Shown here: piece after piece, positions 22,626-38,701 of the stretch
Numbering within the stretch: the first letter of the stretch is position 1
Layout: each line of letters opens with the position of its first letter
Assembly: GCA_904063045.1 (NCBI GenBank)
Contig: CAJFCJ010000015.1
Coordinates: 1,061,034-1,125,033, forward strand
Length of the DNA stretch: 64,000 nucleotides
From: Dimorphilus gyrociliatus
Lineage: Eukaryota > Animalia > Annelida
Direction of reading: 5' to 3'
The notes under the pieces: model-generated
Seen by the model: the letters and a program-made list of their open reading frames with translations, nothing else
Databases searched by the model: none
What the model was told of the DNA's origin: nothing
Translations under genes and position numbers: made by a program

Positions 22626-24757
22626 TTCATGGAAAAATTCCATGAACATATTTCAAATACATATTTCAAATTTATGATTAATTGTTTCTTTTTTTTATTT
22701 CACATTCATGTTTTAAAATATTAAAATATGTTATCTTTTTCTTATCATTGTTTTATTATACATTATTCATAATTTTAAAGCTAAAAAGTTAGTGTTATCT
22801 TGGTTTTCAAAAGTATATCTATGCCAAAAAATGTATTAATATATTTAACATTCTCTTCACTGTTTGTTCGTCTACGTCATAGAATAGGCCAACTAAACAA
22901 AAATTTAGCAACTAGATCAAAATACAGGTTTTAAACTATGGCTTCCAGAGAAAGGAAAAAAAACTGAATGCTTCACGTGACTATCACATGACGATCCAAT
23001 GTTACAAGAAGCAAAGAAATTACATTCCATAAATAAACAGTAACGAATGTAAAGTATGAATGCTTAAATTGAAATGGTTGGCTATAACTATCGAAAATAT
23101 TTCGGTAGTGAGGTAATCGTTACACATACAGCGTACAAACTAGCCTTTAAAGAGTACACTGTTTACCATATGACTAAGTAGAAATTTCGTAATGGCTTTA
23201 TAAAATTTATCAAATAATTAAATAATTAGTTGAAATGAGAATTGAACGATAAAATAGATGTATTTATCATATTATAATTATAGAAATATTCTATATTTAC
23301 GAAGTATTATGACAAGCTTCGCGCTTTCAAAAATTCAGGCTATGTTAGATTCTAGAAGATATTTTTTTCTTTTTTTTACATAAAAAACTCAAGTACTTCC
23401 CTACCTCTGCTCTATGTTAGTTTATAAAGTAACTACACAATTAGTTCTGATAAAATTGCCTCCCCTTTTTTCCCAATCTATCTCTTTCTTTCTGTGTATA
23501 TCTTGCATTAATTAATAAAAGGCCTAACCTTACTACTTAATTTGAATGTTATACACATATTACTAATCTACATAGATATATGCTTTTGTAGTAATACGAT
23601 TATGAAGCATATAGATAACGAATGTGACTTTGTTTATCATCTGTGCTTCTTTTTTTTGATGTAATCAACACAATTTCTATGAACGAAATAGTCAGAATTC
23701 AGTCAAGTATTATTTACTAGCGATTTATCAATACAAGAAGTCTTCATTAACCTCTTAACTGTTTCTTTTTTTAAATAGTTTTATTACTTATTTGACATAG
23801 AAGGCCTAGATTCTCACATTTTTTTAGTTTGTTTATTACGTAATGCGTTTTGGAAATTTCATATATCAGCTGTTTTCTCTTTTTTTAACTTCGGTATTTT
23901 TTTTCTTTGATATACCAGTTTTGTCTGTTAGGCTACTATTGCTCTTTAGACTTAACTTTGGATTAACTGTTAATATGTAATCATAGGCTTTTAAAACTAT
24001 TAATATGTTGTGTAATAAATATTAAAGGAGAACAGGAGTAGTAGCATAAGTGAATTAGATATTTATAGATATAGAATATTGTAACTGTAACAAAAATATT
24101 CAAATATTGTTATTTTATACGAATACAATACTAACTTCTTTCTAAAATATAAACTTTACGTGTTTCCTTATATAGAACAAAAGTAATATTGTGTGCTTTG
24201 GCCTATTTTCCCATCTAGTTACATTCATCTTTAAAGATTCTAAAAAGAAAAAAAATTGAAAGAAAAAAGAATCTATTTATACTATAGTTATATAAAAAAA
24301 AGAGAGAAATACCCTGTCCTGATTTTCAACCTCTATGTTAGAAATAGAAAATAGCCAAAATGTTCTTTTTATTGCGTAATAATAAAATATATACATACTA
24401 AATTTATTTGGAATGTTTGAAGGAAAACTTTTGTTATTTTATTACTATTTGAAAATCAGATAAAATTATATTTTATAGCATTCTTAAGTGAATTTATAAG
24501 TTTCTTTTAATTCATTTTAAGTAAGTCAAATACGAGAAGGTTAGATGAAAAAAATTTAGTCTGCTAAGTGTTTATCACGTGATATAAGTCAACAAAAAAG
24601 TGTCCTGACCTCTATACTAGCAGAATATTGTTACCTGCTATAAAATTGAAAAGAACCTTAAATTAAATAAAAATTCTTGTGCTTGCTGATGAATTTTTGG
24701 TGAAAATCACTTGACCCTCACTTTGTAGAATAAAGTTTAACTCTTTATTCTTCAGCC

Positions 24758-27700
24758 ATGCCGAAAGTACTGTCATATACTATTAACGACGGTGTTGCTG
24801 TCGTCACTGTCGATACCCCAAATTCTAAGGTACAAAATGTTTGTTATTTAATATATGAACATACGAGTAACTTTTGATTTAGCAAATCGTTTGTTGTTTT
24901 TGGTTAAATGTGAATTTATTTATGGTTGATTGTTTCTCAGGTTAATACACTTTCCATAGACAACGCAGATGAATTTAAAGAAGTTCTAAATATTTTGAAA
25001 AATAACGATGATGTAAAAGCGACTGTACTTATATCAGGAAAGCCTGATTGCTTTTTTGCAGGAGCAGATATTAAGTAAGTTAATACACTTAATCATTCGA
25101 AACATCTAAGTATTAAAAAAAAAGGTAGTGTCCATATCCTATGTAGTATAATATTAATAAATTAGCTCATTCGACAGAGGTATGTTCATATATACACAGT
25201 ATATGTACAGAATATAAGAAAAAATACTGCTATTATTATGTTAATACTTATCTTTTTGACCATTTTACAAATGAGATCTGATTATCGCTAGCCAGATTGT
25301 GGTAGGCTTGTTTATTTTTGTCTATTTCGATGTTCCAATTGTTATCAGTTCTACTCTACACAGAGGGTGAAGAGTTGCTTTACAGAGATATCTTACTTAA
25401 TAATCAATCATTCAATCAAAGTTCAAATAGAGTATTACCAAAATGCATCAAAGGTTAGGAGTAGTAAAGTTGCAGAACTTAATAAACTGGTAAAAGTTCA
25501 ACGAGAGTAGATGGGGGGCTAAGAGTAGATAATTGGAAATTTAAGAATTGCCGGATAACATGAAATCATCATTTGACTAATAATGTATTATAGTATGCTA
25601 GAATCATGTAAGACTGCTGAAGAAATACAACATTTGTCAAGAATATGTAAAGGAACTTTTAATGAAATAGCTGAAAGTAAAAAACCAATTGTAGCAGCTA
25701 TAATGGGTCAATGCTTAGGTGCCGGACTTGAGGTATATAATATAATCCTTTTGGGTATTCATTTGCACTAATTTGTGATTAATTATCAGACAGCCTTAGC
25801 CTGTCATTATCGAATAGCTGTCAGGGACAAAAAAACTGTTTTAGCTGTACCGGAAGTGATGATTGGTCTCCTGCCTGGAGCTGGTGGAACGCAAAGACTT
25901 TTGCGCTTAGTAAAAGAGAAAATTAAAATTATATACTTTAAATACCTATCTAAAAAAATTTTTACATTCTCTAAAGCTATCTCTTCCTGATGCATTTGAC
26001 ATGATGCTAACGGGAAAGAATATACGCCCTGATAAAGCTAAGACAATCGGTCTAGTACACATGCTTATTGACCCGAAAGGAGCTTCAGATTCAAAAGAAT
26101 CGAAAGAAGCTACAAGAAAACATTTGGAACAAGTTGCAATTGAAACAGCCAAGGGCTTAGTAGACGGTTCAATTCAAGCATTACCAAGGAGAAAGGGATG
26201 GGTAGAAAGTATATATTAATATATTTCTTATCTATTAGATTATAATCTTCTAAATTCTATTTTATTTCAAAATGCAGCCATTACTGAATACATAATGTGG
26301 TTTAATTTGGGTAGATATTTCTTTATGACACAAGCTCGAAATAGGGTAATGAATATGACGCAAGGCCACTATCCTGCACCATTAAGAATATTAGATGTTG
26401 TTGAGGAAACACTAAAGAGTGGTTATGAACGAGGAAACCAGTTAGAAACCAGATATTTTGGAGAATTAGGTGTAACAAAAGAATCAAAAGCTCTTATTGG
26501 TTTGTTTCATGGGCAGACGCACTGCAAAAAGAATCACTATGGTTCCCCTAGTCCTATTAAGTAAAAAAATTAATAAACCTCCAGTTTCATAATTAGTAGG
26601 TCACTAAATAATACAATTTTCTGCTTTGTTAGAAAAGTTGGTATACTGGGAACTAATTCTATTGGTGCTGGTATTGCAGAAATAACCATTTTTAAAGGTT
26701 ATCCTCTTTCACTGTATGATAAATCAAAGGAAAATTTAGAACAAGGTTTAATATATATAAAGAACAATCTCAAGCAACGAGTTTTAAGGAAACAAATAAG
26801 CGATAATGAAAAAGACAAATTGGTATCTAAATTGGAGACTGGCACGGAATTGGAAAGCATATCAAATGTTGATTTTGTTATTGAAGCTTCAACTGAGAAT
26901 TTTGATAAAAAATGCAAACTTTTACTTGAAATTGAGTCTATAGTAAAGCCGTCTTGTGTCATAGCTGTCCAAACATTATTTAATCCCATCGAAAAAGTAG
27001 CAAAAAGTGCAAAGCGACTCGATAAGGTTAGTTTGTTTTTTTTATTGTAGTCGTATCCTTTTCGTTTTTTTAGGTTAATACTTTATTTCCTATTATTTCC
27101 TTATTCAGATAATTGGTATGCACTATTTCTCACCACTGGCAAAGTCACAGCTATTAGAAATTGTTTCATCCAAGAGTGCAACCAAAGAAACCATAGCAAC
27201 TGCAGTGGATTTAGGTTTAAAGCAGGGGAAAATTGTGATTGTTGTTGGCGATGGACCTTGCTTTTATACAACTAGAATTTTATGCATTCTCGTAGATGAA
27301 TTAGTAAGTATATTAAGAGAAGGAATAAAACCAAAACAATTAGAGGATATGACAAAAAAAATAGGTTGGCCTATGGGATTATGCTCGGTTGTTGATGAAT
27401 TTGGCATTGATAATATTTATGAGGCCTCAAAGGTTCTCTGTAGTCATTATGACGAAAATCTTTTGTCAAAAAACCTCATTATCCTAGAACAATTGGTTAA
27501 GAAGGGAATGCTTGGTAAAAAAATTGGCTTAGGCTTGTTTGAATATGATCCTACAAGAAAATTAAGTATAGACAATCCTGCTGCCATTAAAATAATAGAC
27601 GATAATAAAATTTCACCTAAGGAAAGGTGATAAGAGATTTTATTTTTAAGTAAAAAGAAACTATTTGATAATCTATCAATTGTCATTTTTTTTCTATAGT

Positions 27701-28048
27701 TTGACTACTCAAAACATACAATGGCGTTTAGTGTCTAGAATAATTAATGAAGCAGTTTTATGTCTGGAAGAAGGAACTCTAAAATCCCCTTTGGACGGTG
27801 ACATAGGTGCAGTATTTGGTCTAGGCTTTCCACCATTCTTAGGAGGTAATACCGAACTATTATTTAAATAATTCCCTTTCACTAAACTCGTATTTTTGTT
27901 AGGACCCTTCCGTTATTTAGACATACACGGAGCTGAACAATTAGTAAAGAGAATGGAAAACTTTCGAAAAGTTTATGGAGACGCTTTCAAGCCTTGTAAA
28001 TTACTTATTGAACATTCAAAAGATTCAAAAAAACTGTTTCGTTCCTAA
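24758..28048 (+). CDS. HADHA-like: Divergent HADHA (trifunctional enzyme alpha) paralog
   Basis: Ten exons (24758-24829, 24941-25074, 25594-25732, 25790-25909, 25977-26208, 26278-26560, 26633-27026, 27109-27626, 27700-27845, 27903-28048) splice into one frame collinear with the HADHA at 35428: [36 protein letters not shown]. Confidence 0.9.
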
Positions 28049-28632
28049 TTTGAATAATTAATGAATGAAAAGAAATAAAAAACCTCTCCAATCAAAGAAA
28101 ATATAGGAGTTTTTAAAGACCCTATTTATTTTACTCGATATATTAACGTCTAGTTGTTTGATGATAAAATTCAATTTATTCCTTAGAGCTTTCAAATGAT
28201 TGACGTCTCTTTATCCTGGGAGTTGATAGTTTTTGATCTATCTTTAGATGACGATTTTTTTAAAGTAGTTGTCGCACGATTATTTCCAAAGGATATTCAA
28301 CCAACTGGCTTATAGAATCTATGAATTTTATCCTAAATTACACATTTATCTTAATGATAATAAAGCTTTCATAAATATATTTAGTAGTTCTCCACTCAAA
28401 GCAGTTCAATTCCTTATTGTTTAACTGATCAATTGAACTTTTTTCTAAGTTCTTGCAAAGAGAGTATCTTAATCAGGTGTTTAAGTGTTAAAAAAATAAT
28501 ATGGTTGTTATTACTTTTATCGTTAAGACTTATAAATTTTGCAAAAGAATGAACTTGAATTTGAATATATTACTAATAAGGCATTTTTTGATATATCTAT
28601 CATGATTGGAACCAGTAGCTAACTAGATATCC

Positions 28633-29520
28633 TTATTGGTTTGTGATTCGGGCAGTATTGGTTCCAGGAGTCTTAAATCTAGATACCCATTGATGACTTA
28701 ATATTTCTCTAACTGTCATTCGATCTCTATTCTCCTTTTGACAAATGCTGACAATTAAACTTTTCACTTCCTCTCTTACTGCCCTTGTATGAGGAAAATT
28801 CGGTCCTCTAAGGGCCTCTGAAAGGAGAGTTTGATAGGTGGCATCATTGAATGGTAAGGTACCATACATCATTACATATAATATAACACCTAACGCCCAG
28901 ATGTCACTTTGTGTTGGATGATATGGCTTGCACATTAAAATTTCAGGCGGCACATATGCATAACTACCGCAGTAGGTTTCGCTCAAAACTGGCCTACCAT
29001 CTTCTGTCCAAATCTGAGCTCTAGCAAAGCCGAAATCGGCTAATTTTATATCCCAATTACTATCAAGCATAAGATTTTCGCATTTCATATCTCTGTGAGC
29101 AACGCCTCTTGAATGAATATATTGAACTGCACTTGACATTTGATAAAACCATTTCCCTGCCCTCTGCTCGTCAATAACTCTCTTTTTTCGAATCTCCTCT
29201 AGTAGATCTCCATTCGTAATTTTTTCCATGATTAAGTAGACGTGATTCGTTGTCTCAATTGATTGAAAGAATCGCACAATATTAGGATGCTTAAGGAGTC
29301 TAGCGACATGCAATTCACGTGGCATAAAGGTATTAATATATTCTCGAGGAGCCAATTTTTTAGAAACAATCTTAATTGCCACGTCCGTTCCATGGCGTTC
29401 TGAAGACGCACTTAGAACTTCTGCATAAGTGCCTCTACCTAATGTTTGACCTAATCTATAACCGTACATTTCTAGAACACTCCTCTGTTGAGGCTGTTCA
29501 TTAGTCGATGGTGGAACCAT
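28633..29520 (-). CDS. TSSK: Testis-specific serine/threonine kinase (TSSK4-like), intronless
   Basis: GRGTYA, VAIK, FMPREL, IETTNHVYLIME, AGKWFYQ, HRDMKCEN, DFG and SETYCGSYAY.PPE are TSSK-family features. Confidence 0.88.
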   Translation of the reverse strand: MVPPSTNEQPQQRSVLEMYGYRLGQTLGRGTYAEVLSASSERHGTDVAIKIVSKKLAPREYINTFMPRELHVARLLKHPNIVRFFQSIETTNHVYLIMEKITNGDLLEEIRKKRVIDEQRAGKWFYQMSSAVQYIHSRGVAHRDMKCENLMLDSNWDIKLADFGFARAQIWTEDGRPVLSETYCGSYAYVPPEILMCKPYHPTQSDIWALGVILYVMMYGTLPFNDATYQTLLSEALRGPNFPHTRAVREEVKSLIVSICQKENRDRMTVREILSHQWVSRFKTPGTNTARITNQ

Positions 29521-32199: not shown

Positions 32200-34897
32200 T
32201 TATGGATATCGCTCGACAAGCATTGCGTGTCCTTGACCTCCAGCTGCACAGGCAGCAATCAAAGCGAATTTTCCATCTTCCTTGATTAAACGATTAGCAG
32301 CTGTCGTCGCCAGACGAACACCTGTCGCTCCGAAGGGATGGCCTAGGGAAAGGGAACCACCCCACAAATTGAATTTTTCCAAAGGTGGTGCTCCTGGTTT
32401 TGCGCTTCTCTTCATGTACTTCTTGGCGAAATGATCACTATCTAGAGCCTTTAAGTTAGATAAGATTTGACCCTGTAAAAAAGCAATTCATTTTTAGTAT
32501 CCTATATGCAGTGTATATAATATTTATATTAAGATAGCATTTAATCATCATTGTAATAAACAGTGATTAATCAACTTTTTATGAAAGAGAGTGCAATTTC
32601 AAAGAATATGTTGACGTACCGCAAAAGCTTCGTGATATTCGAAAACATCAATATCTCCCAAGTTAAGTCCAACCTTTTCCAACAAGCGAGGAGTTGCATA
32701 TGCTGGTCTAAATAAATAAATATTGACAGTGTTATAAAAATGAACTGGAACAATAACCTAATTTTTTTAAAATTCTTACGAAAGAAGCAATTGATCCTTA
32801 GGATCCTGAGACACATAAAGGAAGTCTCTCAAGTAAGCTTTAGGTTTCAATCCCAATTCTTTAGCCTTAGCTTCCGTCATTATAAGACAAGCTGAAGCGC
32901 CGTCCGTCTAGTATTCAATACAATAAAAGTATGTTTTAAAAGGATTATTAATATTTATTACCAAGAAAGATGAATTAGCTGCTGTAATTGTTCCATGTGG
33001 TTTGATAAAAGCCGGTTTTAATTTTGCCATTTGTTCCATAGAGCTTGGTCTAACTCCATTGTCTTCTTTGATCACTTTTTCTTTACCGGGTATTTTAAAA
33101 GAAAGAACATCAGTCAAATAGCCATTATCGATGGCTTTTCTTGCGAGAGTATGGGAACGAAGAGCAAACTCATCCTAAGATGGAACATAACAGAAAAATG
33201 TTTGCTTTTACAAGTGATTTTTAATTGGATAATGGTATTTAATACTTGTTCTTTACGGGTGACGCCGAAAGCTGCGCATAATCTGTCAGCGGAGTGACCC
33301 ATAACCTCATTTGTGGAGAATTCGGCAACAGCCGGTAGCTATAAAAGAAACAAATAGTAGTCTAAATACTTAGCTGATAAAAATATCCTTTTTTGAAAAA
33401 TTAATGAATTTACCTCAGGTGTAAGAGCTTTACCAGAAAGCATCTTCATTGCGATGCCTAATTTATCGCCTGTAGATTTCTTACGGTTCAACTGTTGCCA
33501 CAAATATATATAAATATAACGTATATATATGTACAGTATATATAATTTTATAATAAGCAAAAGAATAATCTTACATCAAACATCAATGATCTCATATAGC
33601 GACTATGACGAATTGGAACATCAGACATAAATTCAACTCCACCAGCAATTGTAATACTAGCTTGACCAGAAGCCAAAAGTCCAATACAGGTAGAAATAGC
33701 CTGATTAGACGAGATACAAGCTTGAGTTACAGTGTGTGATGGGGTAAATTCCGAAAATCCAGCTCCCAAAGCAGCCTTAAAGACAAAATATGATTGTTAT
33801 ACTAGATAATCGATTAATGTGAGTCAAGTATCTTTTACTATTTATTATCGGTCAGTTAAAATTTTACTAAAAGAGATAATTAATTACCTCTCTTGCTATG
33901 TTACTAGTCTTAACTTCTTGAATTACTGTTCCGCAAACGATGTAGTCTACGATATCTGTATAAAATAACACTTATGCTAAATTAATAGAAGTATAAAGTA
34001 TATAGATGACCTTTAGAAATTCCTGTCTTTTTGGCTAATCCTCTGTAAATAAACAATAAAGAGTAAGTAAAAATTGCTCTCTAATTAGTATCAGTTTTTA
34101 GAACTTACTGAAGAGCTAATCTCTGTAAATCGTGGGCCATCATATTTTTGTAATCGGTCCATGCTTGAAGAAATGGAGTTCGAACACCGTCGATTAAGAC
34201 AATATTCGGTATACCGGATCTCTCAAGCGATTTAGGCTTAGCTATGTAAGATAGAAGACAGTGACGTTAGAAATATATTTTGTATTAATTCATTTTTATA
34301 TAATCCACTTACATGCTGATGCTTTCGTTGCAGATGCAGTTGCTGCAGTTCTGATAATATCTATTGAAAAGTTAAAAAGAAGAAGTTAACGGCACTTAAT
34401 CTCTGTATTCTTACATTTTTGAGGGAATGATAACAGTAGATAACCTTCAGATAATATAGGATCTAGTTTATAACCTTAATAGTTAAGAATGAAGATAATT
34501 GGAATTTCACTATATAACTTACGACTACTACTTAATAATGAAAATGAAGAGAAATCTTTTATATCCTTTATAATATTTAAAAAAAACGAGTTTTTTCAAA
34601 GAAAACTAACATTTAACATAATAATTCGTTAATTAAATACTTTTTCCATCATTTTATAAAAATAATTGATGAAATATTTTTTACTTCAGTATTTTAGATT
34701 AAAAATGACTTAATAAAAATTAGATTTAACATCTGAATGGGTTGTTTACTGTCATAATGTCTATTTATGTGAAAAAGTTCCCACAATAACAATACACATA
34801 CAATTAAAAAAATTTTTGGAATGTTAATATATAAAATTTTAAACTTACTTTTACGAATGTTATTTAAAAGTTGAATTTTCGGTCTTGATAATGACAT
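32200..34897 (-). CDS. HADHB: Mitochondrial trifunctional enzyme beta subunit (3-ketoacyl-CoA thiolase)
   Basis: [34 protein letters not shown] (catalytic Cys), [22 protein letters not shown] (His), AACAAGGQG (Cys). The exact N-terminal exons are uncertain; a probable non-coding exon lies near 35093-35200. Confidence 0.93.
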
Positions 34898-35427: not shown

Positions 35428-38400
35428 ATGGCGTCTTCTCAACTTTTAGGAGCCTTAAGAACAATAGGCAAAACCAACCATTTGTCTAAATTGGGTAAAC
35501 ATTAATCTTTAACCAAAATATATCTCTTAATTCAATTTGTTATGAAACTATGAATTTTTTTTAGGCTGGCCGAACCTCTACTATTCCAGAGCATTTTCAG
35601 TATCTTCAAGTCAGTCAAAGTACTTGACCTACAGGGTTGAAGATGGTGTAGCTGTTATTACTTTTGATACACCAAATTCAAAGGTATGTTTTAACATTGT
35701 TTACTAGATTTTGATCTTTGAAAGAATTCTATTTTTAGTCAAAAATTCATTGTATATAAACAGTCAGTATGTCTTTTCTCTAGGTTAACACCCTATCATT
35801 TGAAAATTCTGAAGAATTTAAGCAAATTTTGGAAAAATTTAAGAATGACAACACTGCCAAAGCAGGTGTCCTTATATCTGGTAAACCCGATTGTTTCATC
35901 GCCGGAGCCGATATTAAGTGAGTTAACAAAAATTTTTTTGTCTTTCTTACCGCCTATAAATCACACTTACAAGGGAAAGAAAATAAGAGAAAACATTCTT
36001 TTCAAGAGTTCTTTCGCTTTTTTTTTTTAAAAAAAAAAGAAAGTTCTCAAGTCCTTCTAAGGATAAGAAAAAAAATTGGACAAAAATTTTTGAACTTTTT
36101 TTTTCTATTATCTCAAATCAAAAATTGATAAGAATGATAAATTTTTAATGGAGACTTAATAGTAAAATAGAGACTGGTCAAAGTTCTATGAAAGAGAGTT
36201 CAAAGTTTAAGTAAAAAAATGGTAACATTCTAAAAAAGTAATATAGATAATATCACAAAATAAATAAGATCGAATGTTTTTGAAATGACCTTTGGTAAAT
36301 TATATATATATTAGTATATTTATATTTTTTTACTTGGTAAAAATAGATTAGGTATATGGTTAGTGTTCGACTTATTTGACCTTGTTTCGTTTTTCTTAAA
36401 ACTATTAAAAATTTGTAGATTTTATTGATTTACTAATAGATTGATTAAAAAATAGGCCTATATAACTTTGTTTTTCTTTATCTTTATTAATTGTACAACA
36501 TATAATTGCAATGTATTTTATAGTATGCTACAAGCATGCAAAACAACGGAAGATGTTGAAAAAGTCTCTACAGAGAGTAAAGATATGTTGATGGACGTAG
36601 AAAAGAGCAGCAAACCCATTGTCGCCGCTATTATGGGTCAATGTTTAGGAGGAGGTTTAGAGGTTGCCATGTCTTGTCATTACCGAATTGCTGTTAAAGA
36701 TAAGAAAACAACTCTAGCCTTACCTGAAGTTATGTTAGGCATTCTACCAGGTGCTGGTGGAACCCAAAGACTCCAGAAATTGGTATCTCTACCAAATGCA
36801 CTTGATATGATGCTTACCGGAAAGAACATTCGTCCTGACAAAGCAAAGAAGATGGGTTTAGTTAACCAAACTATTGAACCCCTTGGCCCAGGTGTTGACG
36901 AGCCCAAAGTAAATACTAGAAACTACCTTGAACAAGTAGCAATCCAAACTGCCAAAGGCTTGGCTAATGGATCTATCAAAGTTGCTCCCAGAAAGAAGAG
37001 TATGGTCGATAAAGTTACTGAACGTCTTGTTTCTTACGACTTTGGGAGAAACTATGTTCTTAAACAAGCCAGAGATAAAATCATGAAATTAACATTCGGA
37101 AACTATCCTGCTCCTTTAAAAATATTAGAAGTTATTGATGAATCTTTGAAACACGGTTACGATCAAGGTTATAAGGCTGAAACGAAAAAATTTGGTGAAT
37201 TAGGAACTACTAAGGAATCTAACGCTTTAATGGGTTTGTTTCACGGACAAACTCATTGTAAAAAGAACAGATTTGGTACACCTCCTCCCTTAAAGAAGAT
37301 TGGTGTTTTAGGTGCCGGTCTTATGGGTGCTGGTATTGCTCAAGTTACAATGGATAAGGGTTATTCTACAATTTTGAAGGATGTCTCTGAAGCTGGAGTT
37401 GCTAGAGGTCTCAATCAAATTGAATCTAACTTTAATCAAAAAGTTAAGAGAAAGAGAATGACAAGCTTCGAACGTGATCAACTTTTGGGTCAATTGGACA
37501 CTAGCTTGGATTATAGCAGTTTCAAAGATGCCGATATGGTTATTGAAGCCGTTTTCGAGGATTTAGGTATCAAGCACAAAGTTATTAAAGAAGTTGAAGC
37601 TGTTGTACCAGAGAGATGTGTATTCGCAACAAACACATCAGCTCTACCAATCGAACAAATTGCCAAAGGAAGTAGCCGACCAGAAAAAGTAAAATGAAAT
37701 TAATGCTCCTTTTTTTTAAAGATGAACTATAACAATGTTTTTTTTAGGTTATTGGAATGCATTACTTTTCACCTGTAGACAAAATGCAACTTTTGGAAAT
37801 CATTACCCATAAAGGAACATCAAAGGAGACAACATCAGCAGCTGTAGAACTCGGTCTTAAACAAGGAAAAACTGTTATTACTGTGGGTGATGGGCCAGGA
37901 TTCTACACAACCAGAATTTTATCTTTCATGATGGCTGAGTTACTGAGATTATTCCAAGAAGGTGTTAGACCAAAGCAAGTTGACAAACTTAGTAAGAAGT
38001 TCGGTTGGCCAGTTGGCGCTGCTACCTTAGTTGACGAAGTTGGCATTGATGTCGCTAGTCATATTGGTAGATTCATGAAGGACGAATTTGGAGATCGTTA
38101 TACAGATGCCGATGTCTCTTTTATGGATGACATGGTTGACGGTGGTAATTTGGGAAGAAAATCTGGCAAGGGAGTTTATTTATATCAAAAGGGAAGTAAG
38201 GATAAACCAGAAAATCCTGCTGCAATTGAAATAATGGAAAAAACTAAAATAGAGCCAAAGATGGAGTAAGTTACAAAAATTTCCATTTGTTGCCTAAAAA
38301 AAACATCATTTCAACAAAATATCCCATATCCAGGCTTACCGACGAAAATATCCAATGGCGTTTGGCTAGCCGATTTATTAATGAAGCCGTTCTTTGCTTA

Positions 38401-38701
38401 CAAGAAGGAATTTTGGCCTCACCAATTGACGGAGATGTTGGAGCCGTCTTTGGACTTGGTTTCCCTCCATTTTTCGGAGGTTCGTTAACATACTCATTTT
38501 ATCGTCTGAATTATTTATAAAAATAATATATATGTATATTCTAATTTACCAGGACCTTTCCGTTATTTGGACAATCACGGAGCCAAGCAACTAGTTGAAA
38601 GAATGGAAAGATTCCAAGCAGTTTATGGAGATGCATTCAAACCTTGCGACTTACTCTACGATCATGCCAAGGATTCTTCAAAGAGATTCCGTTCAGATTA
38701 G
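35428..38701 (+). CDS. HADHA: Mitochondrial trifunctional enzyme alpha subunit (canonical copy)
   Basis: Seven exons (35428-35494, 35565-35683, 35784-35917, 36524-37688, 37748-38265, 38334-38479, 38553-38701). Leader [55 protein letters not shown]. Confidence 0.96.

Follow-up and report, generated by a model that had tools for sequence, protein, structure and literature searches.

What becomes of a bifunctional enzyme when one half of a duplicated copy degenerates is a question raised by a tandem duplicate of HADHA, the α subunit of the mitochondrial trifunctional protein (TFP) and a textbook, clinically important enzyme, in the annelid Dimorphilus gyrociliatus. The duplicate, here termed the paralogue, lies in a 64,000-nucleotide stretch of contig CAJFCJ010000015.1 (positions 1,061,034 to 1,125,033; hereafter the window), which is AT-rich (roughly 32% GC), has very short introns and also holds a canonical HADHA. 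An initial annotation of the window proposed that the paralogue combines an intact enoyl-CoA hydratase (ECH) site with a degenerate 3-hydroxyacyl-CoA dehydrogenase (HAD) site. We find that the paralogue is a pseudoenzyme-type, lineage-restricted and previously undescribed half-inactivated bifunctional enzyme; the open-access literature yielded no description of a conserved HADHA paralogue with a degenerate dehydrogenase half. We consider it fairly probable that the protein is a selectively maintained one that would be dead as a dehydrogenase but active as a hydratase, acting outside the mitochondrial matrix and keeping its dead half as a scaffold.

A transcribed and conserved duplicate

The paralogue occupies positions 24758–28048 of the forward strand and comprises ten exons, all open and all bordered by GT..AG introns, which encode 727 amino acids that align with HADHA over the full length. 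Exon 1 (24758–24829) opens with the start codon at 24758, preceded by an in-frame TAA (24731–24733), and the protein begins MPKVLSY, without a presequence. The hydratase residues are distributed over the next three exons: exon 2 (24941–25074) carries the AGADI oxyanion motif (25058–25072), exon 3 (25594–25732) ends on the first hydratase glutamate (in GAGLE, 25730–25732; human E151) and exon 4 (25790–25909) holds the second (in PEV, 25853–25855; human E173). Exon 5 (25977–26208) covers the last part of the crotonase domain plus the linker, and exon 6 (26278–26560) linker and domain B. Exon 7 (26633–27026) encodes most of the NAD-binding domain, with GTNSIG at 26649–26666 and Q-T-L at 26970–26978. 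Exon 8 (27109–27626) encodes domain D, together with a histidine (27121–27123; human H498), a glutamate (27157–27159; human E510) and a cysteine (27259–27261); exons 7 and 8 make up the stretch (26633–27630) singled out by the initial annotation. Domain E is encoded by exon 9 (27700–27845), and exon 10 (27903–28048) ends in KKLFRS, with no tripeptide resembling a type 1 peroxisomal targeting signal (PTS1). The corresponding NCBI model, DgyrCDS10432 (P0242, 662 amino acids), is truncated at the N terminus: it starts at an ATG at 25583, within intron 2, and misses exons 1 and 2. We used the joined 727-residue model for local alignments, divergence estimates and trees, and single exons or P0242 for database searches, with P0242 (residues 70–727) as the proxy for the full model in fold comparisons and in searches based on it.

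Contigs assembled from a public run lack all nine introns, each removed at the modelled GT..AG joint with 0 mismatches; because they are spliced, their source must be RNA. In this run (X1) the spliced contigs cover 24473–25074 and 25594–28401, with joints linking exons 1, 2 and 3, and the transcribed span, including both untranslated regions, is 24473–28401 on the forward strand.

When exon 7 served as the profile query in an exhaustive search of 1.84 billion representatives, one paralogue-type match was returned, a 157-residue open reading frame (P0001) from a second, related species, with the motifs GANNIG and Q-T-P. Contigs of this species from four Logan run assemblies contain the whole gene (L003, 471–3621; L001, 525–3675) in an identical gene order: paralogue, kinase, PP2C, thiolase, canonical HADHA. 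The ten exons of this orthologue are identical in length to those of D. gyrociliatus, and its 727 codons contain neither a stop nor an indel; it begins MPKIISY downstream of an in-frame stop. It carries GANNIG, Q-T-P and GPCFY, and it keeps the histidine and glutamate of the dehydrogenase site and both hydratase glutamates. The canonical HADHA of the second species was also modelled for comparison.

Motifs and constraint in the two halves

All the motif differences from the canonical copy that the initial annotation had listed are present. The Rossmann loop reads GTNSIG versus GAGLMG, AVQTLFNP stands for ATNTSALP (Q-T-L for N-T-S) and GPCFY for GPGFY; by alignment to human HADHA (PDB 6dv2), Asn335 takes the place of G370, Gln440 of N475, Leu442 of S477 and Cys509 of G544. 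These differences are not due to chance, since the replaced residues (in the loop, the second Gly, the Leu and the Met; in NTSA, the Asn, Ser and Ala; in GPGFY, the Gly that is Cys in the paralogue) are 97–100% invariant in 115–120 canonical animal HADHAs. For the central glycine, the Leu-Met that follows it and the three NTSA residues, invariance even reaches 100% among 115 HADHAs, and both species carry other residues at these positions. Invariance along the entire GAGLMG loop is 99–100% in animal HADHAs, and the paralogue has no GxGxxG loop; in both species the central glycine is Asn, and the N-T-S motif with its catalytic serine is absent (Q-T-L in D. gyrociliatus, Q-T-P in the second species). 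In Rossmann folds the central glycine of GxGxxG contacts the dinucleotide pyrophosphate. The serine of N-T-S corresponds to HsHAD Ser137 and to Ser122 of Mycobacterium tuberculosis FadB2 and is essential to catalysis (PMC6333283), and the loop Met of HADHA corresponds to Met26, which together with Asn208 sandwiches the nicotinamide (PMC10988713).

Other parts of the dehydrogenase site are kept. The His of MHYFSP and the Glu of LLE (His463 and Glu475) align with human H498 and E510, the catalytic dyad of human HADHA (PMC11385086), and the FYTTR Thr, the Asp that closes β2 and the IEA Glu are also present. In the second species, FYTTR reads FYTMR and the hydratase motif AGADI reads AGANI. Given the pattern of loss, dehydrogenase activity is probably gone, and the protein would no longer oxidize 3-hydroxyacyl-CoA with NAD+.

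We estimated nonsynonymous and synonymous divergence (dN and dS) between the two species by NG86 with a codon bootstrap. For the whole paralogue dN/dS (ω) is 0.159 [0.116–0.208] with 68% protein identity, against 0.039 and 91% for the canonical copy; dS, at about 1.1–1.8, is saturated, so that these ω values are only rough, and a maximum-likelihood (ML) estimate, with ω 0.067 at dS 2.9, likewise indicates saturation. The domain-wise comparison, which the initial annotation had suggested as a check, separates the two halves: dN is 0.318 [0.258–0.376], or roughly 0.32, in the HAD core (domains C and D), 0.135 [0.108–0.170] in the ECH domain and linker, and 0.244 in domain E, compared with about 0.055 for each of these parts in the canonical copy. 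The HAD core has an ω of 0.19 [0.10–0.29] and the ECH domain the lowest ω in the paralogue (0.11). Domain D, with a dN of 0.02 the most slowly evolving part of the canonical protein, ranks among the fastest in the paralogue (0.28). Of the sites with 95% conservation or more among 115 full-length animal HADHAs, here called invariant, 27 of 108 in domains C and D have changed in both orthologues, compared with 8 of the 121 in A, B and E (odds ratio 4.7, Fisher p = 1.6e-4), the ECH domain having lost 5 of 54; a smaller set of partial sequences shows C and D enriched in the same direction. A specific relaxation of the dehydrogenase half is supported by these comparisons.

This relaxation falls far short of decay. 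A decaying, transcribed pseudogene would be in keeping with protein evolution about four times as fast as in the canonical copy, yet we give this explanation next to no credence: an open reading frame of 727 codons without stop, frameshift or indel in two species at dS ~1.4 excludes neutral decay, all splice sites are intact and used, and ω has an upper bound of 0.21. Splicing, the intact orthologue and ω together rule a pseudogene out, as the initial annotation had argued from the open exons and splice sites. Transcription with correct splicing, an orthologue without stop or indel and a dN/dS of 0.16 also mean that neither of the two signs it had named as speaking against its reading, absent expression and a dN/dS near 1, was found.

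A dehydrogenase that remains active with an unusual cofactor pocket is very improbable. Such an enzyme would account for the retention of the His-Glu dyad, the FYTTR threonine, the Asp after β2 and the Rossmann fold, but it would have to work without residues that show 100% invariance across 115 HADHAs and are missing from both species, among them the equivalent of a serine that is essential in M. tuberculosis FadB2 (PMC6333283), and in a protein whose domain D has turned from the slowest part into one of the fastest.

The hydratase half has fared differently. Both of its glutamates (Glu115 and Glu137, aligned with human E151 and E173) and AGADI are kept, and to that extent the site is intact, as the initial annotation had stated; the canonical GGGLE, however, reads GAGLE, a Gly-to-Ala change at a position that is 97–99% conserved, so the site is not perfectly untouched. 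Enoyl-CoA hydratase activity, or at least enoyl-CoA binding, is probably kept, and the protein may still hydrate or bind enoyl-CoA. Loss of both activities, leaving a non-catalytic scaffold, sensor or regulator that binds acyl-CoA or a nucleotide, is unlikely, if the least unlikely of the alternatives. A 2.4-fold increase of dN even in the hydratase half would be expected of such a pseudoenzyme, as would the Gly-to-Ala change in the oxyanion-hole motif of both species and the Asp-to-Asn change in AGADI of the second; the Asn conserved at the former central glycine in both hints at new constraint in the NAD pocket. It is harder to reconcile with both catalytic glutamates being kept in both species and with the ECH domain having the lowest ω and only five lost invariant sites. 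The crotonase oxyanion hole is formed by backbone NH groups, so the Gly-to-Ala change may also be tolerated.

A hydratase-only or pseudo-dehydrogenase subunit, as the initial annotation had it, is thus the reading best supported, with dehydrogenase motifs lost and the hydratase glutamates kept, although it rests on inference from sequence. The dehydrogenase module has the features of a pseudoenzyme: its fold is kept, its cofactor and catalytic residues are lost, and it is expressed and under purifying selection.

Fold and location of the protein

Exon-wise Pfam matches, and Pfam on P0242, describe a single chain in which 3HCDH_N and 3HCDH come after an N-terminal crotonase (ECH) domain. These domains are still detected, with scores below those of the canonical copy (for 3HCDH_N on exon 7, 87.6 bits versus 134.1 for the same canonical stretch). 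The best PDB match is human TFP α (E = 1.7e-181). An AlphaFold2 model of residues 70–727 has a mean pLDDT of 93.3 and superposes on human TFP α (6dv2) in Foldseek with a TM score of 0.94, figures to be read knowing that the input alignment consists mostly of canonical homologues, so that the model leans to the family fold. The five-domain fold appears to be retained. Identity to the canonical copy of the same genome is 55% overall, 64% in the hydratase half and 72% in domain E; in the second species, domain E is 55% identical to the canonical copy.

Why a dead half would be retained is suggested by MFE1, in which domains A and B build the ECH site, helix B is tightly bound to domain E and the dehydrogenase site lies between C and D (PMC10988713). 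The concentration of losses in C and D fits this domain logic, under which the HAD half cannot simply be deleted. The C/D/E half of the paralogue would accordingly have been kept because the hydratase site needs it, being closed by the linker helix (domain B) that packs on domain E. MFE1 (EHHADH), the peroxisomal multifunctional enzyme 1, is another ECH–HAD fusion from this superfamily; it is extramitochondrial and operates with no thiolase partner (PMC10988713), features that the paralogue probably shares. It differs in that its dehydrogenase is active and its C terminus is SKL, whereas the worm proteins end in FRS and FYK and have degenerate dehydrogenase motifs; the paralogue moreover branches with HADHA, not with MFE1.

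The paralogue ATG falls where the mature canonical protein starts, and neither species has a presequence. The canonical N-terminal extension is basic and free of acidic residues, and the first 40 residues contain 4 basic and 0 acidic residues in the canonical protein versus 3 basic and 6 acidic in the paralogue. Upstream of the ATG, the reading frame is closed by a stop 9 codons away in D. gyrociliatus and 22 codons away in the second species, and no further ATG intervenes. The transcript contig runs collinearly with the genome through the 5′ region, and the genome paper of D. gyrociliatus reports no trans-splicing (PMC7854359). The protein is probably located outside the mitochondrial matrix, judging from these N termini. 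Peroxisomal targeting was considered and rejected: the C termini (LFRS and TFYK) are not PTS1-like, and no type 2 signal was matched by eye.

The absent presequence makes it less likely that the paralogue modulates the trifunctional complex, as the initial annotation had proposed, and this proposal is weakened further by the lack of a second HADHB gene adjoining the paralogue: the locus holds one, which is paired with the canonical gene. The role in lipid remodelling that the initial annotation offered as an alternative gained no support here. A mitochondrial modulator would use an uncleaved or internal signal and pair with HADHB and/or canonical HADHA, giving hydratase and thiolase without dehydrogenase. 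The closeness of domain E and the hydratase half to the canonical copy speaks for such a role, as does the human E510Q variant, which shows that a dehydrogenase-dead α subunit can assemble (PMC11385086). We nevertheless regard it as distinctly improbable, given the acidic N terminus without presequence in either species and the single HADHB, arranged head-to-head with the canonical gene; a complex without its middle step would also release 3-hydroxyacyl-CoA, which is linked to pathology in deficiency of the dehydrogenase for long-chain 3-hydroxyacyl-CoA (LCHAD deficiency; PMC11385086).

Comparison with known systems places the paralogue among several partial precedents. With canonical HADHA (human 6dv2 and 5zqz; DgyrCDS10440) it shares the five-domain ECH–HAD fold, intron positions, hydratase glutamates and dyad, and it differs in lacking a presequence, in its broken GxGxxG, Met, NTSA and GPGFY elements, in a dN four to six times higher and in having no HADHB gene as partner. 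Human HADHA p.E510Q, which causes isolated LCHAD deficiency, likewise has a disabled dehydrogenase, with protein levels and the remaining activities preserved (PMC11385086), but it is a disease allele of the sole copy and hits the dyad glutamate, whereas the paralogue is an extra copy under selective maintenance that keeps the dyad and has lost contacts to cofactor and substrate hydroxyl. MLCLAT-1 is a HADHA-derived product credited with a function outside β-oxidation, as a monolysocardiolipin acyltransferase (PMC11385086), and the N-terminal truncation of DgyrCDS10432 and an unspliced contig across intron 2 recall it; MLCLAT-1, however, is missing residues 1 to 227 and derives from the single HADHA gene, while the paralogue is a separate gene that the RNA joints show to be full-length. 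The trypanosomatid AdoMetDC prozyme is also a duplicated enzyme that lost catalytic residues and stayed under purifying selection (PMC5201418). Degeneration in the HADHA paralogue affects only one half of a bifunctional protein, and its missing presequence speaks against its partnering the active copy, in contrast to the prozyme.

The course of events that we favour is as follows. HADHA was duplicated in the dinophilid annelid lineage before the two species split; one copy then dropped its presequence, leaving the ATG at the start of the mature protein, and lost the dehydrogenase residues (central Gly of GxGxxG to Asn, nicotinamide-stacking Met to Ile, N-T-S-A to Q-T-L/P-F/Y and the Gly of GPGFY to Cys), while the two hydratase glutamates and, it appears, all five domains of the fold were kept. 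The resulting protein would act outside the matrix, without HADHB. Several observations weigh against this account. Certain proteins enter the matrix although they carry no cleavable presequence. The hydratase half has changes of its own, in GGGLE in both species and to AGANI in the second. The His-Glu dyad, the Asp ending β2 and the IEA Glu are all kept, and some nucleotide or ligand binding could therefore persist. The ω values and the AlphaFold2 model carry the limits given above, and the expression evidence is one run stored as contigs, which gives no level, tissue or sex.

A bolder version, which we hold to be quite unlikely, is that the paralogue is a cytosolic enoyl-CoA hydratase, the first extramitochondrial derivative of TFP α, whose NAD pocket with its conserved Asn has been re-used as a regulatory or ligand-sensing site. 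If so, the gene would mark a new job for the fold and not a leftover of duplication. More generally, the paralogue offers a natural experiment on which α-subunit domains are needed once the dehydrogenase becomes dispensable (A, B and E being constrained, C and D relaxed), on whether a subunit of the trifunctional protein can function outside the matrix without HADHB, and on how half-dead bifunctional enzymes evolve. Its wider impact is moderate, as the function is inferred and the lineage is a small group of annelids without easy genetics.

Origin of the duplicate and its neighbours

In quick and careful ML trees, both paralogues and both canonical copies form one clade (SH-aLRT 100 in one, bootstrap/SH-aLRT 100/100 in the other), which is sister to a clade with Capitella (89/97) inside the spiralian HADHAs; the stem of the paralogues is 0.98 long and that of the canonical copies 0.19. 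A search of 5.8 billion proteins with P0242 found its own canonical copy as the nearest relative outside itself (55%), other animals reaching 50% or less. Trees and search together indicate a duplication specific to the dinophilid annelid lineage and older than the split of the two species. The searches gave no sign of a more ancient and widely distributed paralogue family: in the exon 7 profile search of 1.84 billion representatives the second species supplied the sole paralogue-type match, and word searches with exon 8 and P0242 returned only the open reading frame of that species and then the own canonical copy.

The canonical HADHA (35428–38701, forward strand; seven exons, 765 amino acids, with presequence) is identical to NCBI DgyrCDS10440 and lies 7.4 kb downstream of the paralogue on the same strand. 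Its 1165-nt exon (36524–37688) corresponds to five paralogue exons (25594–27026) in both species, and the four extra paralogue introns coincide in position and phase with those of a gastropod HADHA (Candidula, L005). These introns are therefore ancestral, and the canonical copy has lost a block of four adjacent introns, which agrees with the loss of introns that the genome paper reports (PMC7854359). The paralogue, having kept them, arose as a DNA-level copy; a retrocopy is ruled out, as it has more introns than the canonical gene. Recent gene conversion was also rejected as the cause of domain E conservation: paralogue and canonical copy are equally similar whether compared inside one species or across the two, and dS has reached saturation.

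Three further sets of sequences emerged from the searches. Metagenomic exon open reading frames of 170 amino acids that share DEFGID were rejected as kin of the paralogue, being slightly closer to the canonical copy. P0292, from a JGI metagenome contig (765 amino acids), is a third dinophilid-like canonical HADHA, identical at 724 of 765 positions to that of the second species and at 702 of 765 to that of D. gyrociliatus; no paralogue-type partner was found from that source. P0049 (305 amino acids, from the representative library) is an unrelated short HAD-family protein with the loop GAKGLG and H-A-A for N-T-S, and its degenerate motifs show that dead dehydrogenase modules recur elsewhere in the HAD family.

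Between the two HADHA copies lie an intronless Ser/Thr kinase on the reverse strand, a PP2C phosphatase and an HADHB-type thiolase. The thiolase (approximately 32200–34700, reverse strand; identified from open reading frames matching Thiolase_N and Thiolase_C) stands head-to-head with the canonical HADHA, and its last exon best matches the human trifunctional β subunit, HADHB (E = 6e-30). This head-to-head layout is the vertebrate-type arrangement and is the same in the second species (L003); the duplication hit HADHA only. The kinase (28633–29520, 295 amino acids) is 85% identical at the DNA level in the second species; one transcript run yielded no contig there, which is uninformative on its expression.

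The intron that follows AGADI-N is long (416–606 nt) in both copies and both species, compared with about 57–111 nt for the other introns; it corresponds to 25075–25593 (intron 2) in the paralogue and 35918–36523 in the canonical gene. An unspliced transcript contig spans 25052–25623, across the paralogue intron. Possible explanations for the long intron, this contig and the internal ATG are a retained intron, an internal promoter and a regulatory element.

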